In this document: piece by piece, positions 679-6,500 of the stretch
Layout of the letters: each line of letters begins with the position of its first letter
Position numbering within the stretch: position 1 is the stretch's first letter
Sequence record: MN159079.1
Direction: 5' to 3' (one strand)
DNA length: 64,000 nucleotides
Translations under genes and position numbers: made by a program
The notes under the pieces: generated by a model
Told to the model about the DNA's origin: nothing
The model's input: only the letters and a program-made list of their open reading frames with translations
Databases searched by the model: none

Positions 679-1095
679 ATGGCTAAGACTTTCCGTAAGG
701 CTGATACTATCAGTTCTAACTATCCCCTGTACGCTGTTGTGAATGCGGACGCTAAATCCACAAAGAACCTGGCGGTGTTTCCGCAACAATTGGTTCAGAA
801 GTTATCTCAATGGAAGTATATGCGAATCACTCAAGTCGGTGATCGTGTTATCTTCTTCTTTACCGATAAGAAGTCTGCTCTGGACTTCGATCTCTCTGCC
901 GGCCGGATCCTGGTCAATCTTGACAAGATGAGTTCTAGTGGCCGTGATTGGTACGAGTACCTCATCGACTCAATACAGGGTAAGGTTACGTTCGAGAGTA
1001 ACTATGGTATCGACGACATCATGGACATGGTCAAAGTCATTCGTCCTGACCTGGGTGGTGATACCGAAACCATTTTGAGAATACTCGATAAATGA
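679..1095 (+). CDS. Hypothetical protein
   Basis: AAGGA RBS, 138 aa, followed by a terminator. Confidence 0.8.
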   Translation: MAKTFRKADTISSNYPLYAVVNADAKSTKNLAVFPQQLVQKLSQWKYMRITQVGDRVIFFFTDKKSALDFDLSAGRILVNLDKMSSSGRDWYEYLIDSIQGKVTFESNYGIDDIMDMVKVIRPDLGGDTETILRILDK

Positions 1096-1603: not shown

Positions 1604-2101
1604 ATGCACGATTGGCTGGAAGGAACTAAAGGTTATAACGAGTGTGTTGTTCAGGTCAGACTCGACGCACCCCAGGATAGCCGCACTGGCTACATGTTGA
1701 ACAACATGCTTTACAGCAACACCGATCTCACTGAACTGGCACCAGACTTCCGGGGCTGTCCTCACAACGGTGGTGAACACACCTGTACTGTGACTGGTAC
1801 CCGACAAGAAGTCATCGCCTGGCTGGATTTGGTTGTAGAAGAATATCCTGATTGGGAGCACGCAGCAACCAAGATCAAAGGTCATATCCGCAAAGAGTTC
1901 CTCGGAACTGAATGGCGTAAATATGGTCGGATCAACATCTATCTGAAAAAGATGGAATGTCTGAAGTTGGAACGAGGCCAAGATCGCCCTGACATCAAAC
2001 CGTGGTTCAAGGGTGAATGGGAAAACGAAGAACGTAAGAACTTCAAACCCACTCGTCGCCAACAACTCATCAACGAAAAGAACCGTACCGGTCGCCACTA
2101 A
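1604..2101 (+). CDS. Hypothetical protein (paralog of 1211..1594)
   Basis: AAGGA RBS; DAPQ...CPHNGGEHTCTVTGTRQEVIAWL motif. Confidence 0.8.
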   Translation: MHDWLEGTKGYNECVVQVRLDAPQDSRTGYMLNNMLYSNTDLTELAPDFRGCPHNGGEHTCTVTGTRQEVIAWLDLVVEEYPDWEHAATKIKGHIRKEFLGTEWRKYGRINIYLKKMECLKLERGQDRPDIKPWFKGEWENEERKNFKPTRRQQLINEKNRTGRH

Positions 2102-2110
2102 GGAGCTACC

Positions 2111-2896
2111 ATGTCAGTACCAAATAAAGAAATCAACATTTTAACCATAAAAGATCTCAACAATGAAGTTGGGAGACGACATCACACCCAAGGGTACAAG
2201 ATCGCTTTCCCGTTCGTTTCTGGTTGTAACATGACTCTCCTCCCTTTGCTGGTACTTGGGGGTGATCCGGTTAAAGACCTGCGAACTGCAATGACCAAGA
2301 TGACCAACATACCCACCCCTGCAACCTATCATGAGTTTTACATCATTGGTGATGACTTGGCTGAAAAAGAAAATCAGGAGTTCATCGAAGAGTGGCTGAG
2401 TAAAACCCACGGTTCATCAGGATTGACCAGAACCATAACTGGCGAGAACGATGATAAGTTTAACAAGCTTATCGCCTTGGTCGATGAAACCCATGATAAA
2501 ATCTGTTTTTACCATTCTGGTGAAAGGATCTTTGTGTGGGTGAGTTCCATAAAGCTGGATTACCCCAATGATAGCTTGAAAACGTTCAGTGAATCCGAAT
2601 ACAGATGTTACAGTAGCACTGTGTTGGAAGCTTCACCCTTTATGGATGATTTCAATAACCTCTACGGACTGATCACTGTACTTCCCAAAGGTGCTTTCAT
2701 AGATGATGGCGGTGTGCTGGCGAATAATAGTGGGAGGTCCATCCATCTCGAGTTCATCGAGAATGACAAAGAACCGTCCACGGAACAGTACACCAAAGAA
2801 GAAGTTGTGAAACTGGTGCGATTCATCGACAACTCCATTACGGACGAAGAACTCGAAACACTACTTCGTGTTATGAAGAAGAGGGCCGTTTCGTGA
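2111..2896 (+). CDS. Hypothetical protein
   Basis: AAGGAG RBS, 261 aa, operon-like spacing. Confidence 0.75.
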   Translation: MSVPNKEINILTIKDLNNEVGRRHHTQGYKIAFPFVSGCNMTLLPLLVLGGDPVKDLRTAMTKMTNIPTPATYHEFYIIGDDLAEKENQEFIEEWLSKTHGSSGLTRTITGENDDKFNKLIALVDETHDKICFYHSGERIFVWVSSIKLDYPNDSLKTFSESEYRCYSSTVLEASPFMDDFNNLYGLITVLPKGAFIDDGGVLANNSGRSIHLEFIENDKEPSTEQYTKEEVVKLVRFIDNSITDEELETLLRVMKKRAVS

Positions 2897-3294
2897 TTAC
2901 TCGTCAAACCTTTAAGAACTTGGATGCGGAACTTCCATCGCTTTCAAGCTTCTTTCTACCAAACATTCCGTGTGCGGAAGTTAATGGATACTTGGTGATC
3001 CAAGCCAATGCTAGGAAGTTTCCCGAGAAACTGCTTATGCTGGCCAGGAAGTATCCAGGAATCACGATCCAGCACTGCAATGGTAAATTGTTGTTCGGTG
3101 GATCATTAGTGGGACCTGGTATTCCTGAAAGAACGGAGAAAAGAGACGGGACGTTTACGTTTCATATCTCCACCTACCCAGAACTTGCGACACCTAGATT
3201 CTGGGCGACACTTTCTATGCTTGCTCAAGCCCAACGTAAAACCTGGGTCACCGAGTTCACAAGCTACCTGAAACCTGTACAAAACAACTATTAA
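2893..3294 (+). CDS. Hypothetical protein
   Basis: GTGA start/stop overlap with the upstream gene. Confidence 0.7.
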   Translation: MITRQTFKNLDAELPSLSSFFLPNIPCAEVNGYLVIQANARKFPEKLLMLARKYPGITIQHCNGKLLFGGSLVGPGIPERTEKRDGTFTFHISTYPELATPRFWATLSMLAQAQRKTWVTEFTSYLKPVQNNY

Positions 3295-3305
3295 GGAAAA
3301 AGATC

Positions 3306-4820
3306 ATGCAAAACACCAAAATGATGAGTGAGAACAAAGACTGGATCGTTTACAGCAACTACTGGCGCACCACCTCTCGGATCCTTGAACGCATGGGTGG
3401 TGAGTACACCAGCCAGGTTGAAATCAATCTGTCCGACGAGAACAACTCTGCCGAAGCTTTGGCGGAATTGCGTATTCGTCAACACACCACCCCACCGTCC
3501 CTTCGTGATGTGATCAGTCACTATTACGAAACTTCTGTCCACGACAAACTGGTTGAGTTGATCGGGCCTGATAAAGCCTGGATCGCTGAACACTGCAACA
3601 TCCTCCCGTTCATTGACTGGCCGGAGTATAACCGGAAATGTAATGGCGGGGTCCCGTTGATCGAGTGTCTGAAAGAACTGGCACCCCCGGTCCATGCGTA
3701 CAGTGCGGTGAACGCGGTCAAGTTGAACACGTATCCGACTCGTGAACAGTTCTTCTACGATTTCGTTCTTGATGAGTGGGATCGTGACCTGGGACATCTG
3801 GAGTTCATCTGTGGTTCCATCATTATGTATGCAGCTGCTTCCGCCAGGTTGTTCTTCATGTTCAATCCTTCCAGTGAGACATTCCATCTTTTCCTGAAGT
3901 GTCGTGACAGTGCTAACGGCAGTGCCCAGGTTATGATGAGTGCCGATTTGGAAGGTCTCAAGAAGTGGCATGAAAGTACTCGTGGGATGGTTAGCTCGTT
4001 CTTCCAGGATGACTACGAAGGGATCTATCCTGATACCGCCATTCTTCAAAAGGGGATGACGGATGGGATCAACTACCTGATCTGGAAATACCTGGTCAAA
4101 GATGTGATCACTGAGAAGCCCAAGGAAATCGAACGTCGTTGGATGATCACTGATCGCAAGGTAGCTCTCCAACGTCTTGTGGGCTCCGTGTGTAAGAGTG
4201 TTCAACAATTCTACACACCGGACGGCACCCGTTACCGCCAGACCATCAACGAAGACCAAATTACCACTTACGAGAAAACCGTGAAGACTGGTAAGGGTCT
4301 GGTCAGGACCGAAGTGAACACTCCGATCACTCACAAAGCGTATCTGGATATGTATCACGCGCTTGACTGTCCTAAGCCGGTGAATAAGCTCCGTTATGAA
4401 TACCATCACAAAGGCTATTGCTTTGATGTCGATGTTTACACCGACAACAAGATGATCACCGCTGAGCTGGAGTTCAAAACAGTCAAGGAAGCGAAAGAGT
4501 TCCATAAGGTACCTGATTGGTTCGGTGAAGAGATCACTGATCTGGAAGGCGTCAGTAACTTCGACATCTTCAAAACGATCAATGAAAAGCCGAAGGTAAC
4601 TCTGGAACAACTCACGATGCACATGAAAGGTCGTGAACTTCGTTTTGTTTACAAGAACTACCGTGGTGATGTAGCCACTCGCCGGGTATCTCGTCCGTTC
4701 TCTATCAAGTTCGGGTCTAACGAGTATCACGAAGAAGAACAGTGGTTGTTGGAAGCGTGGGATTTGGACAAGAACCTCCCTCGTGTATTCGCCATGAAAG
4801 ACATCATCGAGTTTAAATAA
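3306..4820 (+). CDS. Three-part protein: unknown N-terminal domain + CYTH (triphosphate tunnel metalloenzyme) + C-terminal WYL domain
   Basis: CYTH motifs KEIERRWMI, RYR, YEKTVK, KLRYEY, DVDVY, TAELEF, PDWFGEEIT; WYL motifs FVYKNYRGDVATRRV..P..IKFG...QWLLEAWDLDKNLPRVFAMKDI. Confidence 0.85.
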   Translation: MQNTKMMSENKDWIVYSNYWRTTSRILERMGGEYTSQVEINLSDENNSAEALAELRIRQHTTPPSLRDVISHYYETSVHDKLVELIGPDKAWIAEHCNILPFIDWPEYNRKCNGGVPLIECLKELAPPVHAYSAVNAVKLNTYPTREQFFYDFVLDEWDRDLGHLEFICGSIIMYAAASARLFFMFNPSSETFHLFLKCRDSANGSAQVMMSADLEGLKKWHESTRGMVSSFFQDDYEGIYPDTAILQKGMTDGINYLIWKYLVKDVITEKPKEIERRWMITDRKVALQRLVGSVCKSVQQFYTPDGTRYRQTINEDQITTYEKTVKTGKGLVRTEVNTPITHKAYLDMYHALDCPKPVNKLRYEYHHKGYCFDVDVYTDNKMITAELEFKTVKEAKEFHKVPDWFGEEITDLEGVSNFDIFKTINEKPKVTLEQLTMHMKGRELRFVYKNYRGDVATRRVSRPFSIKFGSNEYHEEEQWLLEAWDLDKNLPRVFAMKDIIEFK

Positions 4821-4830
4821 GGAGTGCAGG

Positions 4831-5436
4831 ATGTTTAACCGTAAAGAAACCGCTGAAAAGATCATGGACCGTCTTCGTTTAATCGTCGTTCCTGGTGGGG
4901 ATATCTACGTGTACCCTGAAGAGATCGCCTACAAAGTAGGCTCTCATTTCTGTGGGAAGACCATTACCACCTTCTATTCGAGCGGGAAGGGTTTTCTTGA
5001 GTTACGGAAGAGAGTACTCGAGTTAGCTAATATCGCGGAACAGCCACTGAAGGCAGTTCCCGTAATTCGGCTACTCGCCCTCAATGAAAAACACAAGGTT
5101 GTTTCCAATCCAATCGTCATTCATGATGCCGACACCCCGGAACAACTGTTCGATAGTTCTATCGCTGTGGCCTGTGCCGAAGCCAGGAAGTATGTTAATG
5201 CCAGGGGTGTGTTCGGACGAGTCTTCTTTGAAGAAGTAGAAGACTCGCTTTCCCTCTTCGCATTGAGTATGGTTCAACGGCGTGTTCCAGGGTTCTCGGT
5301 CGGACCCCGTCCCACCAACCCCGGTAAGTCGGTCACTCAGGCCGAGGTAATGTTCGCCATCGAAAAACTGAAACAGAAGGATGGACGTGTATCTGCCAAC
5401 CTTCTTCTCAATCACTTGTTTGGAGTACAGAAATGA
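4831..5436 (+). CDS. Hypothetical protein
   Basis: AAGGAG RBS, 201 aa. Confidence 0.8.
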   Translation: MFNRKETAEKIMDRLRLIVVPGGDIYVYPEEIAYKVGSHFCGKTITTFYSSGKGFLELRKRVLELANIAEQPLKAVPVIRLLALNEKHKVVSNPIVIHDADTPEQLFDSSIAVACAEARKYVNARGVFGRVFFEEVEDSLSLFALSMVQRRVPGFSVGPRPTNPGKSVTQAEVMFAIEKLKQKDGRVSANLLLNHLFGVQK

Positions 5437-6500
5437 GTAACGATAACTACATGCAGGCTCTCAAGCATGCTTTCGAAGTGACCAAAGAGGAACAGGCTGG
5501 GAAAGCCACCACCCCTATCTGCCCCACCGGTCATGAATCCTTCATTAACAAACTGAAGGACGCCCACGCACCGACTCACCCTGGCTACTTCGACGACCTG
5601 GATAAGAAAGGTAAAGGAGGTTACATTCCTCCTGCTGGATGCACGTTTCCTCACTCGGCACCACACATCCGTCGTTCTGTCAACGGTCTCGATGAATTTC
5701 TTTCTGGTCTGGAACAGGAGGAGTCCGAAACACTGCGTGTTGGATGCCCGGTAGATTTCGATGAGGAAGATGCTTTCGACATCGAACTCGACGAGACACC
5801 GGAAGAAATGCTGGCCAGGATGGAAGCTCGCGAGAAACGTTGGGATCCCACCCCCATTCCCCGAGCGTTGTATGACATCGAACAACTGGTGGAACCGCTC
5901 CTGGGTCGTTTACTTGGCGCTGCACGGCACCAACGTGACACCCAGATCGACATGGGCACTGCGGTATCTCCCGATCCCGCATTCAGTGGTGAACTGGAAG
6001 GGTTCCAGGTGGTCATCACTCCGCGACCTTTGACACGCTACATTCAGATCCAGGTTGGACGCTGCGGCTTCATCAACCATCTGATGGAACCTGGTTGGGA
6101 GTTCGGTAGTTTCACCGAAGAAGAGTTGAAAGATACCACTCTCTATCAGTGTCAACTCAATCTCTTGAAGAAGCTGTTGGTGGATATGCATTACGGCCTG
6201 TCCGTCCATCAGCACATCAAGATGGAAGTGTTGGGACCGATTCTCGAGAAACGTGATCACTACGAGATGAAGAAGATTCTTCCTCCCTCTGTTGATTACC
6301 GGTTCAAGGGTAACAAAGGTTGCTTCTTCATGTTTAATGGTGAAGAAGTGTTTTACAAAGATCGTTCCGTCCATGCCAGGGAACAGAAAGTGAAGGAGTA
6401 CGCAAAACTCCATTCTCTGCTGAAAACCGCCATGTTGAAAACGTCGTACATTCCACCTTTCATGGTGGATTACAACAGTCCCAAAGTCTTCCGTTATTAA
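5433..6500 (+). CDS. Hypothetical protein with an acidic N-terminal third
   Basis: ATGA-type overlap, 355 aa, phage-like codon usage. Confidence 0.8.
   Translation: MSNDNYMQALKHAFEVTKEEQAGKATTPICPTGHESFINKLKDAHAPTHPGYFDDLDKKGKGGYIPPAGCTFPHSAPHIRRSVNGLDEFLSGLEQEESETLRVGCPVDFDEEDAFDIELDETPEEMLARMEAREKRWDPTPIPRALYDIEQLVEPLLGRLLGAARHQRDTQIDMGTAVSPDPAFSGELEGFQVVITPRPLTRYIQIQVGRCGFINHLMEPGWEFGSFTEEELKDTTLYQCQLNLLKKLLVDMHYGLSVHQHIKMEVLGPILEKRDHYEMKKILPPSVDYRFKGNKGCFFMFNGEEVFYKDRSVHAREQKVKEYAKLHSLLKTAMLKTSYIPPFMVDYNSPKVFRY

Follow-up and report, generated by a model that had tools for sequence, protein, structure and literature searches.

To our knowledge, WYL domains have been described almost exclusively as sensors, on regulators of bacterial defense. 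In Rl CapW, the residues that contact single-stranded DNA (ssDNA) are S144, R164, R168 and R184 (PMC11662680). The CYTH domain, or triphosphate tunnel metalloenzyme (TTM) domain, is present in NeuTTM (Nitrosomonas europaea NE1496, a specific inorganic triphosphatase), for which Tyr28/Lys52 was proposed as the catalytic dyad (PMC3440374). NeuTTM and CthTTM are phosphatases that belong to one sequence cluster (cluster 2 for NeuTTM), apart from the class IV cyclases, which make up a small cluster of their own (PMC8233210). In phages, 'CYTH domain' open reading frames (ORFs) were noted in the T4-like group (PMC1524935), and the CYTH triphosphatases scattered in jumbo phages were proposed, together with MazG enzymes, to degrade unwanted NTPs (PMC7824862). 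Here we analyzed a gene of Aeromonas phage D9 (MN159079.1, 260,857 bp), a chimallivirus, that carries both domains on a single polypeptide. The gene is located at 3306..4820, on the + strand, of a stretch of 64,000 nucleotides (nt) that corresponds to the first 64 kb of the phage genome (hereafter, the window); positions 2000-6500, which were compared with the D9 record, showed 100% identity at unchanged coordinates. The close D9 relatives D3, D6 and LAh10 (genus Ludhianavirus) are classed in the Chimalliviridae, i.e., the nucleus-forming jumbo phages (PMC13678102).

The ORF of 504 amino acids (aa) was present on the + strand exactly as a first-pass annotation, made from the sequence, had described it. 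The following features were delimited in this gene and directly after it:

3306..4820, + strand: fusion gene, 504 aa plus stop, with N-core, N2, CYTH and WYL on one polypeptide.
3321..3689, + strand: N-core domain (aa 6-128), a conserved jumbo-phage domain that matches phrog_30474 (E=1e-17).
3690..4121, + strand: N2 subdomain (aa 129-272), a variable beta-sheet plus two long helices in the AlphaFold2 (AF2) secondary structure.
4119..4589, + strand: CYTH/TTM domain (aa 272-428), NeuTTM-like, with the full active-site set; it matches phrog_6660 (E=3.5e-34).
4626..4817, + strand: WYL domain (aa 441-504) of a phage-type clade; it matches phrog_3715 (E=1e-18) and PF13280.
4831..5436, + strand: partner gene X, 201 aa, no known domain, directly downstream of the fusion gene also in D3, D6, LAh10 and the metagenomic contig L005.

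Judged from sequence comparison, the CYTH-WYL fusion and gene X appear to combine known domains into an architecture and a module that are new and rare and whose function we infer. The component domains CYTH and WYL are known; new, within the searches made, are the arrangement of four domains, the partner gene X and the repeated linkage between N and WYL. The reading that we favor, and that we consider about evenly balanced between right and wrong, is that of a four-domain chimallivirus protein whose CYTH domain is a triphosphate phosphohydrolase, which works with the X product, with the WYL domain serving both. In the evolutionary step that this reading supposes, a jumbo-phage-specific N domain would have acquired a catalytically complete NeuTTM-type CYTH and a phage-type WYL.

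A frameshift or an assembly error had been named beforehand as a possible source of the fusion, which would then be an annotation artefact or a decaying gene whose domains have no joint function. All three modules do occur as separate genes in many phages, and the product of 3306..4820 is labeled only 'hypothetical protein' in the D9 GenBank entry. However, a 1515-nt ORF without internal stop was found in D9, D3, D6 and LAh10, phages from India and Australia that were sequenced independently. Between the fusion genes of D9 and LAh10 we counted 51 synonymous and 5 non-synonymous differences (ratio of non-synonymous to synonymous differences, pN/pS, 0.03), with no non-synonymous change in CYTH, and pN/pS was 0.02-0.06 in every module when D9, D3, D6 and LAh10 were considered. 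In addition, the protein P0002 (506 aa), encoded in a 14-kb metagenomic contig (L005), is 35% identical to the D9 protein over its full length and has the same architecture, and the downstream gene order is shared. The signal lies well above what chance would give. With the artefact thus refuted, and its probability negligible, we conclude that the fusion is genuine and that the protein is real and expressed-looking.

The fusion is also rare. In an exhaustive HMMER search of 1.84 billion representatives, 3227 matches were recovered, and the architectures were counted in the best 150 of these 3227. About 57 were CYTH-only, 71 were WYL-only and 17 were N-only; four were multi-module proteins, namely D9's own cluster, P0002, and two N-CYTH proteins without WYL (P0004 and P0006), so that CYTH and WYL were found on one chain, among these best 150, only in D9's own cluster and in P0002; further fusions may be present among the lower-ranked matches. 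WYL was observed near CYTH in none of 31 metagenomic loci recovered via CYTH motifs, all of which were CYTH-only. A scan of IMG/VR with the full-length alignment gave one locus, CYTH-only as well, and word-indexed homolog searches gave nothing further, whether the query was the whole protein, its N half or the N alignment. Both domain assignments of the first-pass annotation proved right, the fusion being real and, within the best 150 of 3227 matches and the 31 metagenomic loci, rare; its remark that no CYTH-WYL architecture has been described also agreed with the literature searched, in which none was found.

The span first assigned to CYTH (4122-4590) agreed with the envelope of the hidden Markov model (HMM) match, 4119-4589, and the quoted motifs were found at E274-I-E276-R-R278, E387-L-E389-F390 and P403-D-W-F-G-E-E-I-T411. 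The D9 protein by itself matched the CYTH structures 2FBL/3TYP with E=8e-5, and a profile of 41 standalone CYTH relatives matched 2FBL end to end with E=1e-36. In a local CYTH-only alignment the tunnel residues E274, E276, R277, Q301, Y303, R309, R311, K327, R334, E336, K361 and R363 were kept, and so were D376, E387, E389, W405-F-G, E409 and T411; D9 deviates at two positions, both by conservative replacement (K278 to R, E374 to D). The ExExK signature of the first strand is present, with both Glu residues invariant in the 41 relatives; at the Lys position, Arg is found not only in D9 but in 7 of these relatives as well. Furthermore, Y303 and K327 of D9 correspond to Tyr28/Lys52 of NeuTTM. 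By sequence criteria, the domain is a member of the NeuTTM-like phosphatase group, an assignment that was partly anticipated in GenBank, where the D3 and D6 ortholog records are labeled 'putative CytH-like phosphatase'. Since the catalytic set is intact, the nearest relatives lie in the phosphatase cluster and no cyclase structure was matched at E<=1, the domain would most likely be a divalent-metal-dependent phosphohydrolase that acts on a triphosphate group, and not a cyclase. Its substrate could be inorganic triphosphate, an NTP or dNTP, or a 5′-triphosphate end.

A cyclase had been offered as an alternative for this domain. It would be a CyaB-like class IV adenylyl or nucleotidyl cyclase, and the cyclic nucleotide would be made when the WYL domain binds its ligand. 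The CYTH family was founded partly on CyaB of Aeromonas hydrophila, which belongs to the host genus of D9 (PMC3440374), and the metal and triphosphate residues are common to cyclases and phosphatases. On the other hand, the family profile matched NeuTTM, a protein of the phosphatase cluster, with the E-value given above, no class IV adenylyl cyclase structure was among its PDB matches at E<=1, and the class IV cyclases cluster apart (PMC8233210). The Tyr/Lys dyad proposed for hydrolysis by NeuTTM is conserved as well (PMC3440374). Given that the D9 domain is closest to the phosphatase-type TTMs, we consider a cyclase very improbable.

Other members of the CYTH clade were found in different settings. 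In the T4-like Aeromonas phage AS4 (L002:2748-4118) the standalone CYTH gene overlaps a preceding 110-aa gene and abuts the thymidine kinase gene (tdk). This neighbor, together with the proposal of NTP degradation (PMC7824862), is compatible with a role of CYTH in the nucleotide pool, and we take it as weak evidence. Another fusion of the same clade, P0141 (422 aa), joins CYTH to a class I methyltransferase domain, and two ORFs of ~580 aa (L014:477-2225 and L021:3914-5638) have an N-terminal CYTH followed by ~400 uncharacterized residues.

The span first assigned to WYL (4630-4817) agreed with the Pfam match, which covered residues 441-500. The PF13280 score was 19.3 bits in the full protein, below the cutoff of 21.8, and 24.7 bits on aa 429-504 alone; 34 of the 39 relatives in the WYL clade matched this family. 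The N-terminal half and the C-terminal half (aa 268-504) were modeled separately with AF2, and the C-terminal model contained five strands at aa ~445-503, with a predicted local distance difference test score (pLDDT) of 94-97, in the Sm-like SH3 beta-barrel fold. The top Foldseek matches of this domain were PafBC, CapW, BrxR and DriD (probability 0.98-1.0, E 2e-3 to 0.3), the E-values being modest because the domain is small. Modeling had been named in advance as a check on the C-terminal 65 aa, and in the model these residues did adopt the WYL fold. In the phage WYL clade Y449, N451, R459, H475, Q479, D486 and R493 are invariant, and the clade also occurs as standalone proteins of 70-90 aa.

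The activity of the enzyme was further proposed to be gated by ssDNA or RNA. When the CapW residues were mapped onto the D9 domain, through a weak HMMER alignment to 9C5G (E=0.33) plus the alignment pattern of the clade, S144 aligned to the invariant N451, R164 to E473 (or Q479), R168 to E483 and R184 to D499. In the phage clade, then, the three contact arginines are replaced by acidic or neutral residues and the S144 position stays polar. Because three of the four ssDNA-contact residues are changed in this weak alignment, ssDNA gating found no support, and the WYL ligand is probably not bound in the manner in which CapW, BrxR and DriD bind ssDNA. As the first-pass annotation had stated, a helix-turn-helix (HTH) is absent, none being detected with Pfam, NCBIfam or PADLOC. 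A WCX domain was not matched in these three resources either, and the protein ends 4 residues past the WYL barrel. The lack of HTH and WCX, together with the changed contact residues, argues that the D9 WYL is not a regulator of the CapW/BrxR type.

WYL domains of the same clade were seen elsewhere in phages. In the Escherichia phage 4MG (L004:3076-3288), and in many Vequintavirinae and related phages, a WYL gene of ~70 aa lies between the genes for endonuclease VII and the DNA polymerase exonuclease subunit; these standalone genes are mostly annotated as hypothetical. The proteins P0067 (464 aa), P0135 (511 aa), P0047 and P0061 end in the same phage-type WYL and have unrelated, unassigned N-terminal regions, and P0010 and P0022 contain two WYL stretches each. 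These sequences suggest a promiscuous use of the phage WYL clade as a C-terminal module.

The kinship of the WYL fold also brings in a different function, in which the WYL domain, and possibly a PUR-like N2, would bind ssRNA or ssDNA while the CYTH tunnel trims a 5′-triphosphate end. Such an activity would change how stable, or how visible, phage or host transcripts are, and in the Chimalliviridae, to which D9 belongs (PMC13678102), the phage mRNAs must exit the phage nucleus. WYL binds ssDNA in CapW, BrxR and DriD and is reported to serve as an accessory ssDNA-binding module on enzymes such as PIF1 (PMC11662680; works cited in PMC13622015). The Foldseek grouping with CapW, BrxR and DriD and the position of the Vequintavirinae relatives between endonuclease VII and the exonuclease subunit point in the same direction, and the N2 residues ~166-236 form a four-strand-plus-helix unit whose topology fits a PUR-alpha repeat. 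The match of this unit to PUR-alpha was, however, not significant (best Foldseek E=0.04, probability 0.90, ~78 columns, target TM-scores 0.29-0.55). In addition, three of the four CapW contacts are Glu, Gln or Asp in the phage clade, and the CYTH domain is nearest to a tripolyphosphatase and not to the Cet1-type RNA triphosphatases. We consider end processing by a tethered enzyme unlikely, and an effect on transcripts equally so.

The N-terminal ~270 aa had been left unassigned. This held for Pfam, NCBIfam and the PDB, and did not hold for phage families, since the region belongs to the jumbo-phage family phrog_30474 and has matches in BFVD. The model of the N-terminal half had a mean pLDDT of 82 and a predicted TM-score (pTM) of 0.77, with pLDDT 93-96 in N-core and 59-83 in N2. 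In spite of the confident model, N-core had no PDB match by sequence or fold, and neither N-core nor N2 matched a Pfam or NCBIfam family, a permissive Pfam scan being likewise empty. The BFVD matches of N-core were uncharacterized jumbo-phage proteins only, from phages EL, RisingSun and pEt-SU, and some of them consist of the core alone (130-180 aa). In the family alignments D12 and R25 of N-core are invariant, and W13, F14, W20, R29, G31, G32, R58, H72, H96 and D104 are retained in at least 90% of the sequences; N2 is conserved over its full length only in P0002, P0003 and a few others. A 2H-phosphoesterase reading of N-core, prompted by the H-x-T at aa 60-62, was rejected: the motif does not recur as H-x-T/S at the distance typical of that family, and Foldseek returned no 2H structure.

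Members of the N family are OBP gp223, Kc263 gp007, PS1_0173, ACP1_0004 and the proteins of EL, RisingSun and pEt-SU (HMM E=1e-55 to 1e-84). When the loci of D3/D9, PS1/ACP1, OBP and Kc263, which are distant chimalliviruses, were compared (L001, L011, L012 and L013), the N-family gene occupied the same position. The conserved arrangement begins with nrdB, encoded on the opposite strand, and continues with small genes of the + strand, the N gene itself, a minus-strand gene of ~200 aa and a Ser/Thr protein phosphatase gene. From this conserved genome position it follows that the N-domain gene is ancestral and that CYTH and WYL were added. In OBP (L012:7571-8816) and Kc263 (L013:7553-8852) the N-family genes are in tandem, with a core-only paralog of ~150 aa directly upstream of the ~270-aa gene. 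The gene upstream of the D9 fusion (2893-3294) was compared with this small paralog and did not match it, and no counterpart of the paralog was detectable in D9.

Gene X itself had no Pfam (permissive scan included), PHROG or PADLOC match, and it is under strong purifying selection (pN/pS 0.03). There is no terminator-like site of note in the gap between the fusion gene and X, and the two genes are joined by a further feature:

4820..4824, + strand: Shine-Dalgarno-like AGGAG for X, which overlaps by one base the TAA stop of the fusion gene (4818-4820).

This overlap of stop and ribosome-binding site is consistent with co-translation of the fusion gene and X. In the loci L006 and L007 the N-CYTH gene without WYL (P0004 and P0006, respectively) is followed by a gene for a protein of 237/238 aa, directly in L006 and one gene further in L007. 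The last 72 residues of these proteins are a WYL domain that is 53% identical to aa 433-504 of D9, and their first ~160 aa are homologous to X (hhalign probability 93.5%, E=2.2e-7, 143 columns; reciprocal HMM cross-matches of 6e-5 and 5e-4). The module is arranged as N-CYTH-WYL followed by X in the D9-like phages and L005, and as N-CYTH followed by X-WYL in L006 and L007. A third form was observed in the Aeromonas phages ACP1 and PS1 (Ferozepurvirus), which have no CYTH: only 3 nt separate an N-only gene from the next gene, of 175 aa, whose product has a WYL at its end (E about 1e-17), and the N-terminal part of this partner has no detectable relation to X.

Because the WYL can sit on either product, the gene neighborhood suggests that the D9 fusion protein and the X product act together and share the WYL. 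By this sequence comparison the fusion protein would most likely cooperate with the product of 4831..5436, and the WYL would probably be a ligand-binding or targeting module for the pair, since in the relatives it is carried by X instead of by the enzyme.

Several observations weigh against the reading of a triphosphate phosphohydrolase that shares its WYL with X. First, Pfam PF01928 gave no match on the D9 protein, even at E<=10; the relatives P0138, P0014, P0134 and P0013 passed it (24-33 bits against a cutoff of 23.2), so that D9 membership in this family is transitive, through relatives that pass the threshold while D9 does not. Second, the AF2 model of CYTH had a pLDDT of 85-97 in the first half and below 50 at aa ~359-429, which was probably caused by misalignment of the second CYTH half in the modeling alignment. 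Since that half was modeled poorly, the tunnel fold of the family (an eight-stranded beta-barrel or open cup) is supported in D9 by the sequence and not by the model, and Foldseek with the C-terminal model found CYTH structures only weakly (2GFG and 3SY3, at E about 0.3). Third, the N-family genes of OBP, Kc263 and RHph_I42 have neither WYL nor CYTH within about 8 kb, so the linkage of N and WYL is recurrent and not universal. Fourth, no clear grouping emerges among the WYL domains of the module variants: in a relatedness comparison over 62 columns the D9 WYL was near its L006 and L007 counterparts (second to sixth place among 80) and not near those of L005, ACP1 and PS1, which makes repeated capture of WYL as likely as hopping within the module. 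Fifth, all the immediate neighbors of the fusion gene are ORFans with respect to Pfam and PHROGs, the sole match among the neighboring genes being a PHROG of unknown function on gene 1604-2101. Finally, the N domain is conserved more widely than any other part of the module, and the true effector could be this domain, to which CYTH would be an accessory.

The last point leads to a broader proposal, in which an N gene and a partner that bears WYL form a so far unrecognized module of the nucleus-forming jumbo phages, into which CYTH is optionally inserted. The N domain, with a novel fold, would be the core effector, the WYL would sense a ligand other than ssDNA (e.g., a nucleotide-derived signal made upon infection), and CYTH would add triphosphate chemistry in some lineages. 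We hold this proposal as tentative, and rather doubtful.

The variant without CYTH also bears on a counter-defense function, close to the one suggested in the first-pass annotation, in which a nucleotide-pool or signaling enzyme would use CYTH to remove a triphosphate-bearing alarm molecule or precursor and WYL to sense the infection state. The CYTH catalytic set is complete, and a standalone CYTH gene lies beside thymidine kinase in T4-like Aeromonas phages. NTP-degrading roles were proposed in a review of jumbo phages (PMC7824862), and WYL is a hallmark sensor of the regulators of defense systems (PMC4012209; PMC13622015). However, PADLOC gave a weak WYL match only and no other defense-related match, and the neighborhood showed no link to known anti-defense genes. 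Moreover, since the module exists without CYTH in ACP1 and PS1, the CYTH chemistry is not its core. We also know of no CYTH enzyme that opens cyclic phosphodiesters. A counter-defense function thus seems improbable to us, and the predicted phosphohydrolase that cooperates with X remains the reading that we prefer.

The start of the fusion gene is accompanied by a putative translation signal:

3293..3297, + strand: Shine-Dalgarno-like AAGGA, read from the sequence, 8 nt 5′ of the ATG at 3306.

The standalone N-family proteins start at the position of M6 of D9 (M-x-S-x-N-K-D-W), and the in-frame ATGs at 3321 and 3324 are possible alternative starts, a Shine-Dalgarno-like sequence being present only for the ATG at 3306. 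On the minus strand an ORF of 524 aa (3291..4865) spans the entire fusion gene; it is most likely mechanical, because the 51:5 pattern of synonymous and non-synonymous differences in the + frame and all the homology favor the + strand. The fusion gene lies within a closely packed run of + strand genes. At the start of this run, directly after gene 679..1095, there is a perfect 8-bp GC-rich hairpin (1098-1117) with T-runs on both strands, which resembles a bidirectional terminator, and no convincing promoter or terminator signals were found inside the run, from this hairpin to about 9.1 kb. In phage D3 (L001:2905-4214) the annotation of nrdB, the gene for the beta subunit of ribonucleotide reductase, consists of two coding sequences separated by a small ORF, which suggests that the gene is split or interrupted; the D9 counterpart of this region is located at or before the start of the window.

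If the fusion and X form a functional unit, a conserved and unannotated position in chimallivirus genomes, between nrdB and the Ser/Thr phosphatase gene, would become accessible, and the role of WYL could be compared across three natural arrangements, in which WYL is carried by the enzyme, WYL is carried by the partner, or the module lacks CYTH. The enzyme would also be a further phage protein predicted to process triphosphates, with a built-in ligand-binding domain. If the proposal of a novel N-WYL module were true, this would be a new phage sensor-effector system and not a one-off fusion. If, instead, the protein only does housekeeping work as a triphosphatase, with an accessory domain, these results would mainly improve how four phage genomes and three PHROG families are annotated. 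In D9, a WYL of a distinct phage clade is coupled with an enzyme and with a conserved jumbo-phage protein, and the known ssDNA-contact positions are altered.

Compared with the described systems, the D9 CYTH domain resembles NeuTTM (2FBL/3TYP) end to end over ~150 aa, and both contain the ExExK-type strand, the tunnel Arg, Lys and Glu residues, the Tyr/Lys pair and the C-terminal W-F-G-E-E-x-T. They differ at K278, which is the Arg of D9, at E374, which is its Asp, and in the last ~15 residues, which are divergent. NeuTTM is a standalone bacterial enzyme, whereas the D9 domain lies between a 270-aa N-terminal region and a WYL. The standalone phage CYTH proteins of phrog_6660, from the T4-like Aeromonas phages AS4, 25 and 44RR2.8t, belong to the same clade as D9, are 31-38% identical to it and share the conserved residues. 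Unlike D9, their genes encode ~155 aa without N or WYL, and that of AS4 adjoins thymidine kinase. The WYL of D9 shares the Sm-like beta-barrel and the Pfam family with those of CapW, BrxR, PafBC and DriD. It differs from them in that there is no HTH and no WCX, and in that the WYL is joined to an enzyme and not to a DNA-binding domain; with respect to the CapW-type WYL, three of four ssDNA-contact residues are changed and a 6-residue insertion precedes the W-L-L strand. A C-terminal WYL that serves a catalytic protein as an accessory binding module occurs in the AAA ATPase 8BNS and in a bacterial PIF1 helicase (the latter cited in PMC13622015), and the D9 WYL is likewise C-terminal. The catalytic partners in these two proteins differ from those of D9, and a CYTH partner for WYL was not found described in the literature searched. 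Finally, the jumbo-phage proteins of phrog_30474 have the same N domain as D9 and the same position between nrdB and the Ser/Thr phosphatase gene. They are 130-285 aa long and end after the N domain, whereas CYTH and WYL were added to it only in the lineages of D9 and L005, and CYTH alone only in L006 and L007.

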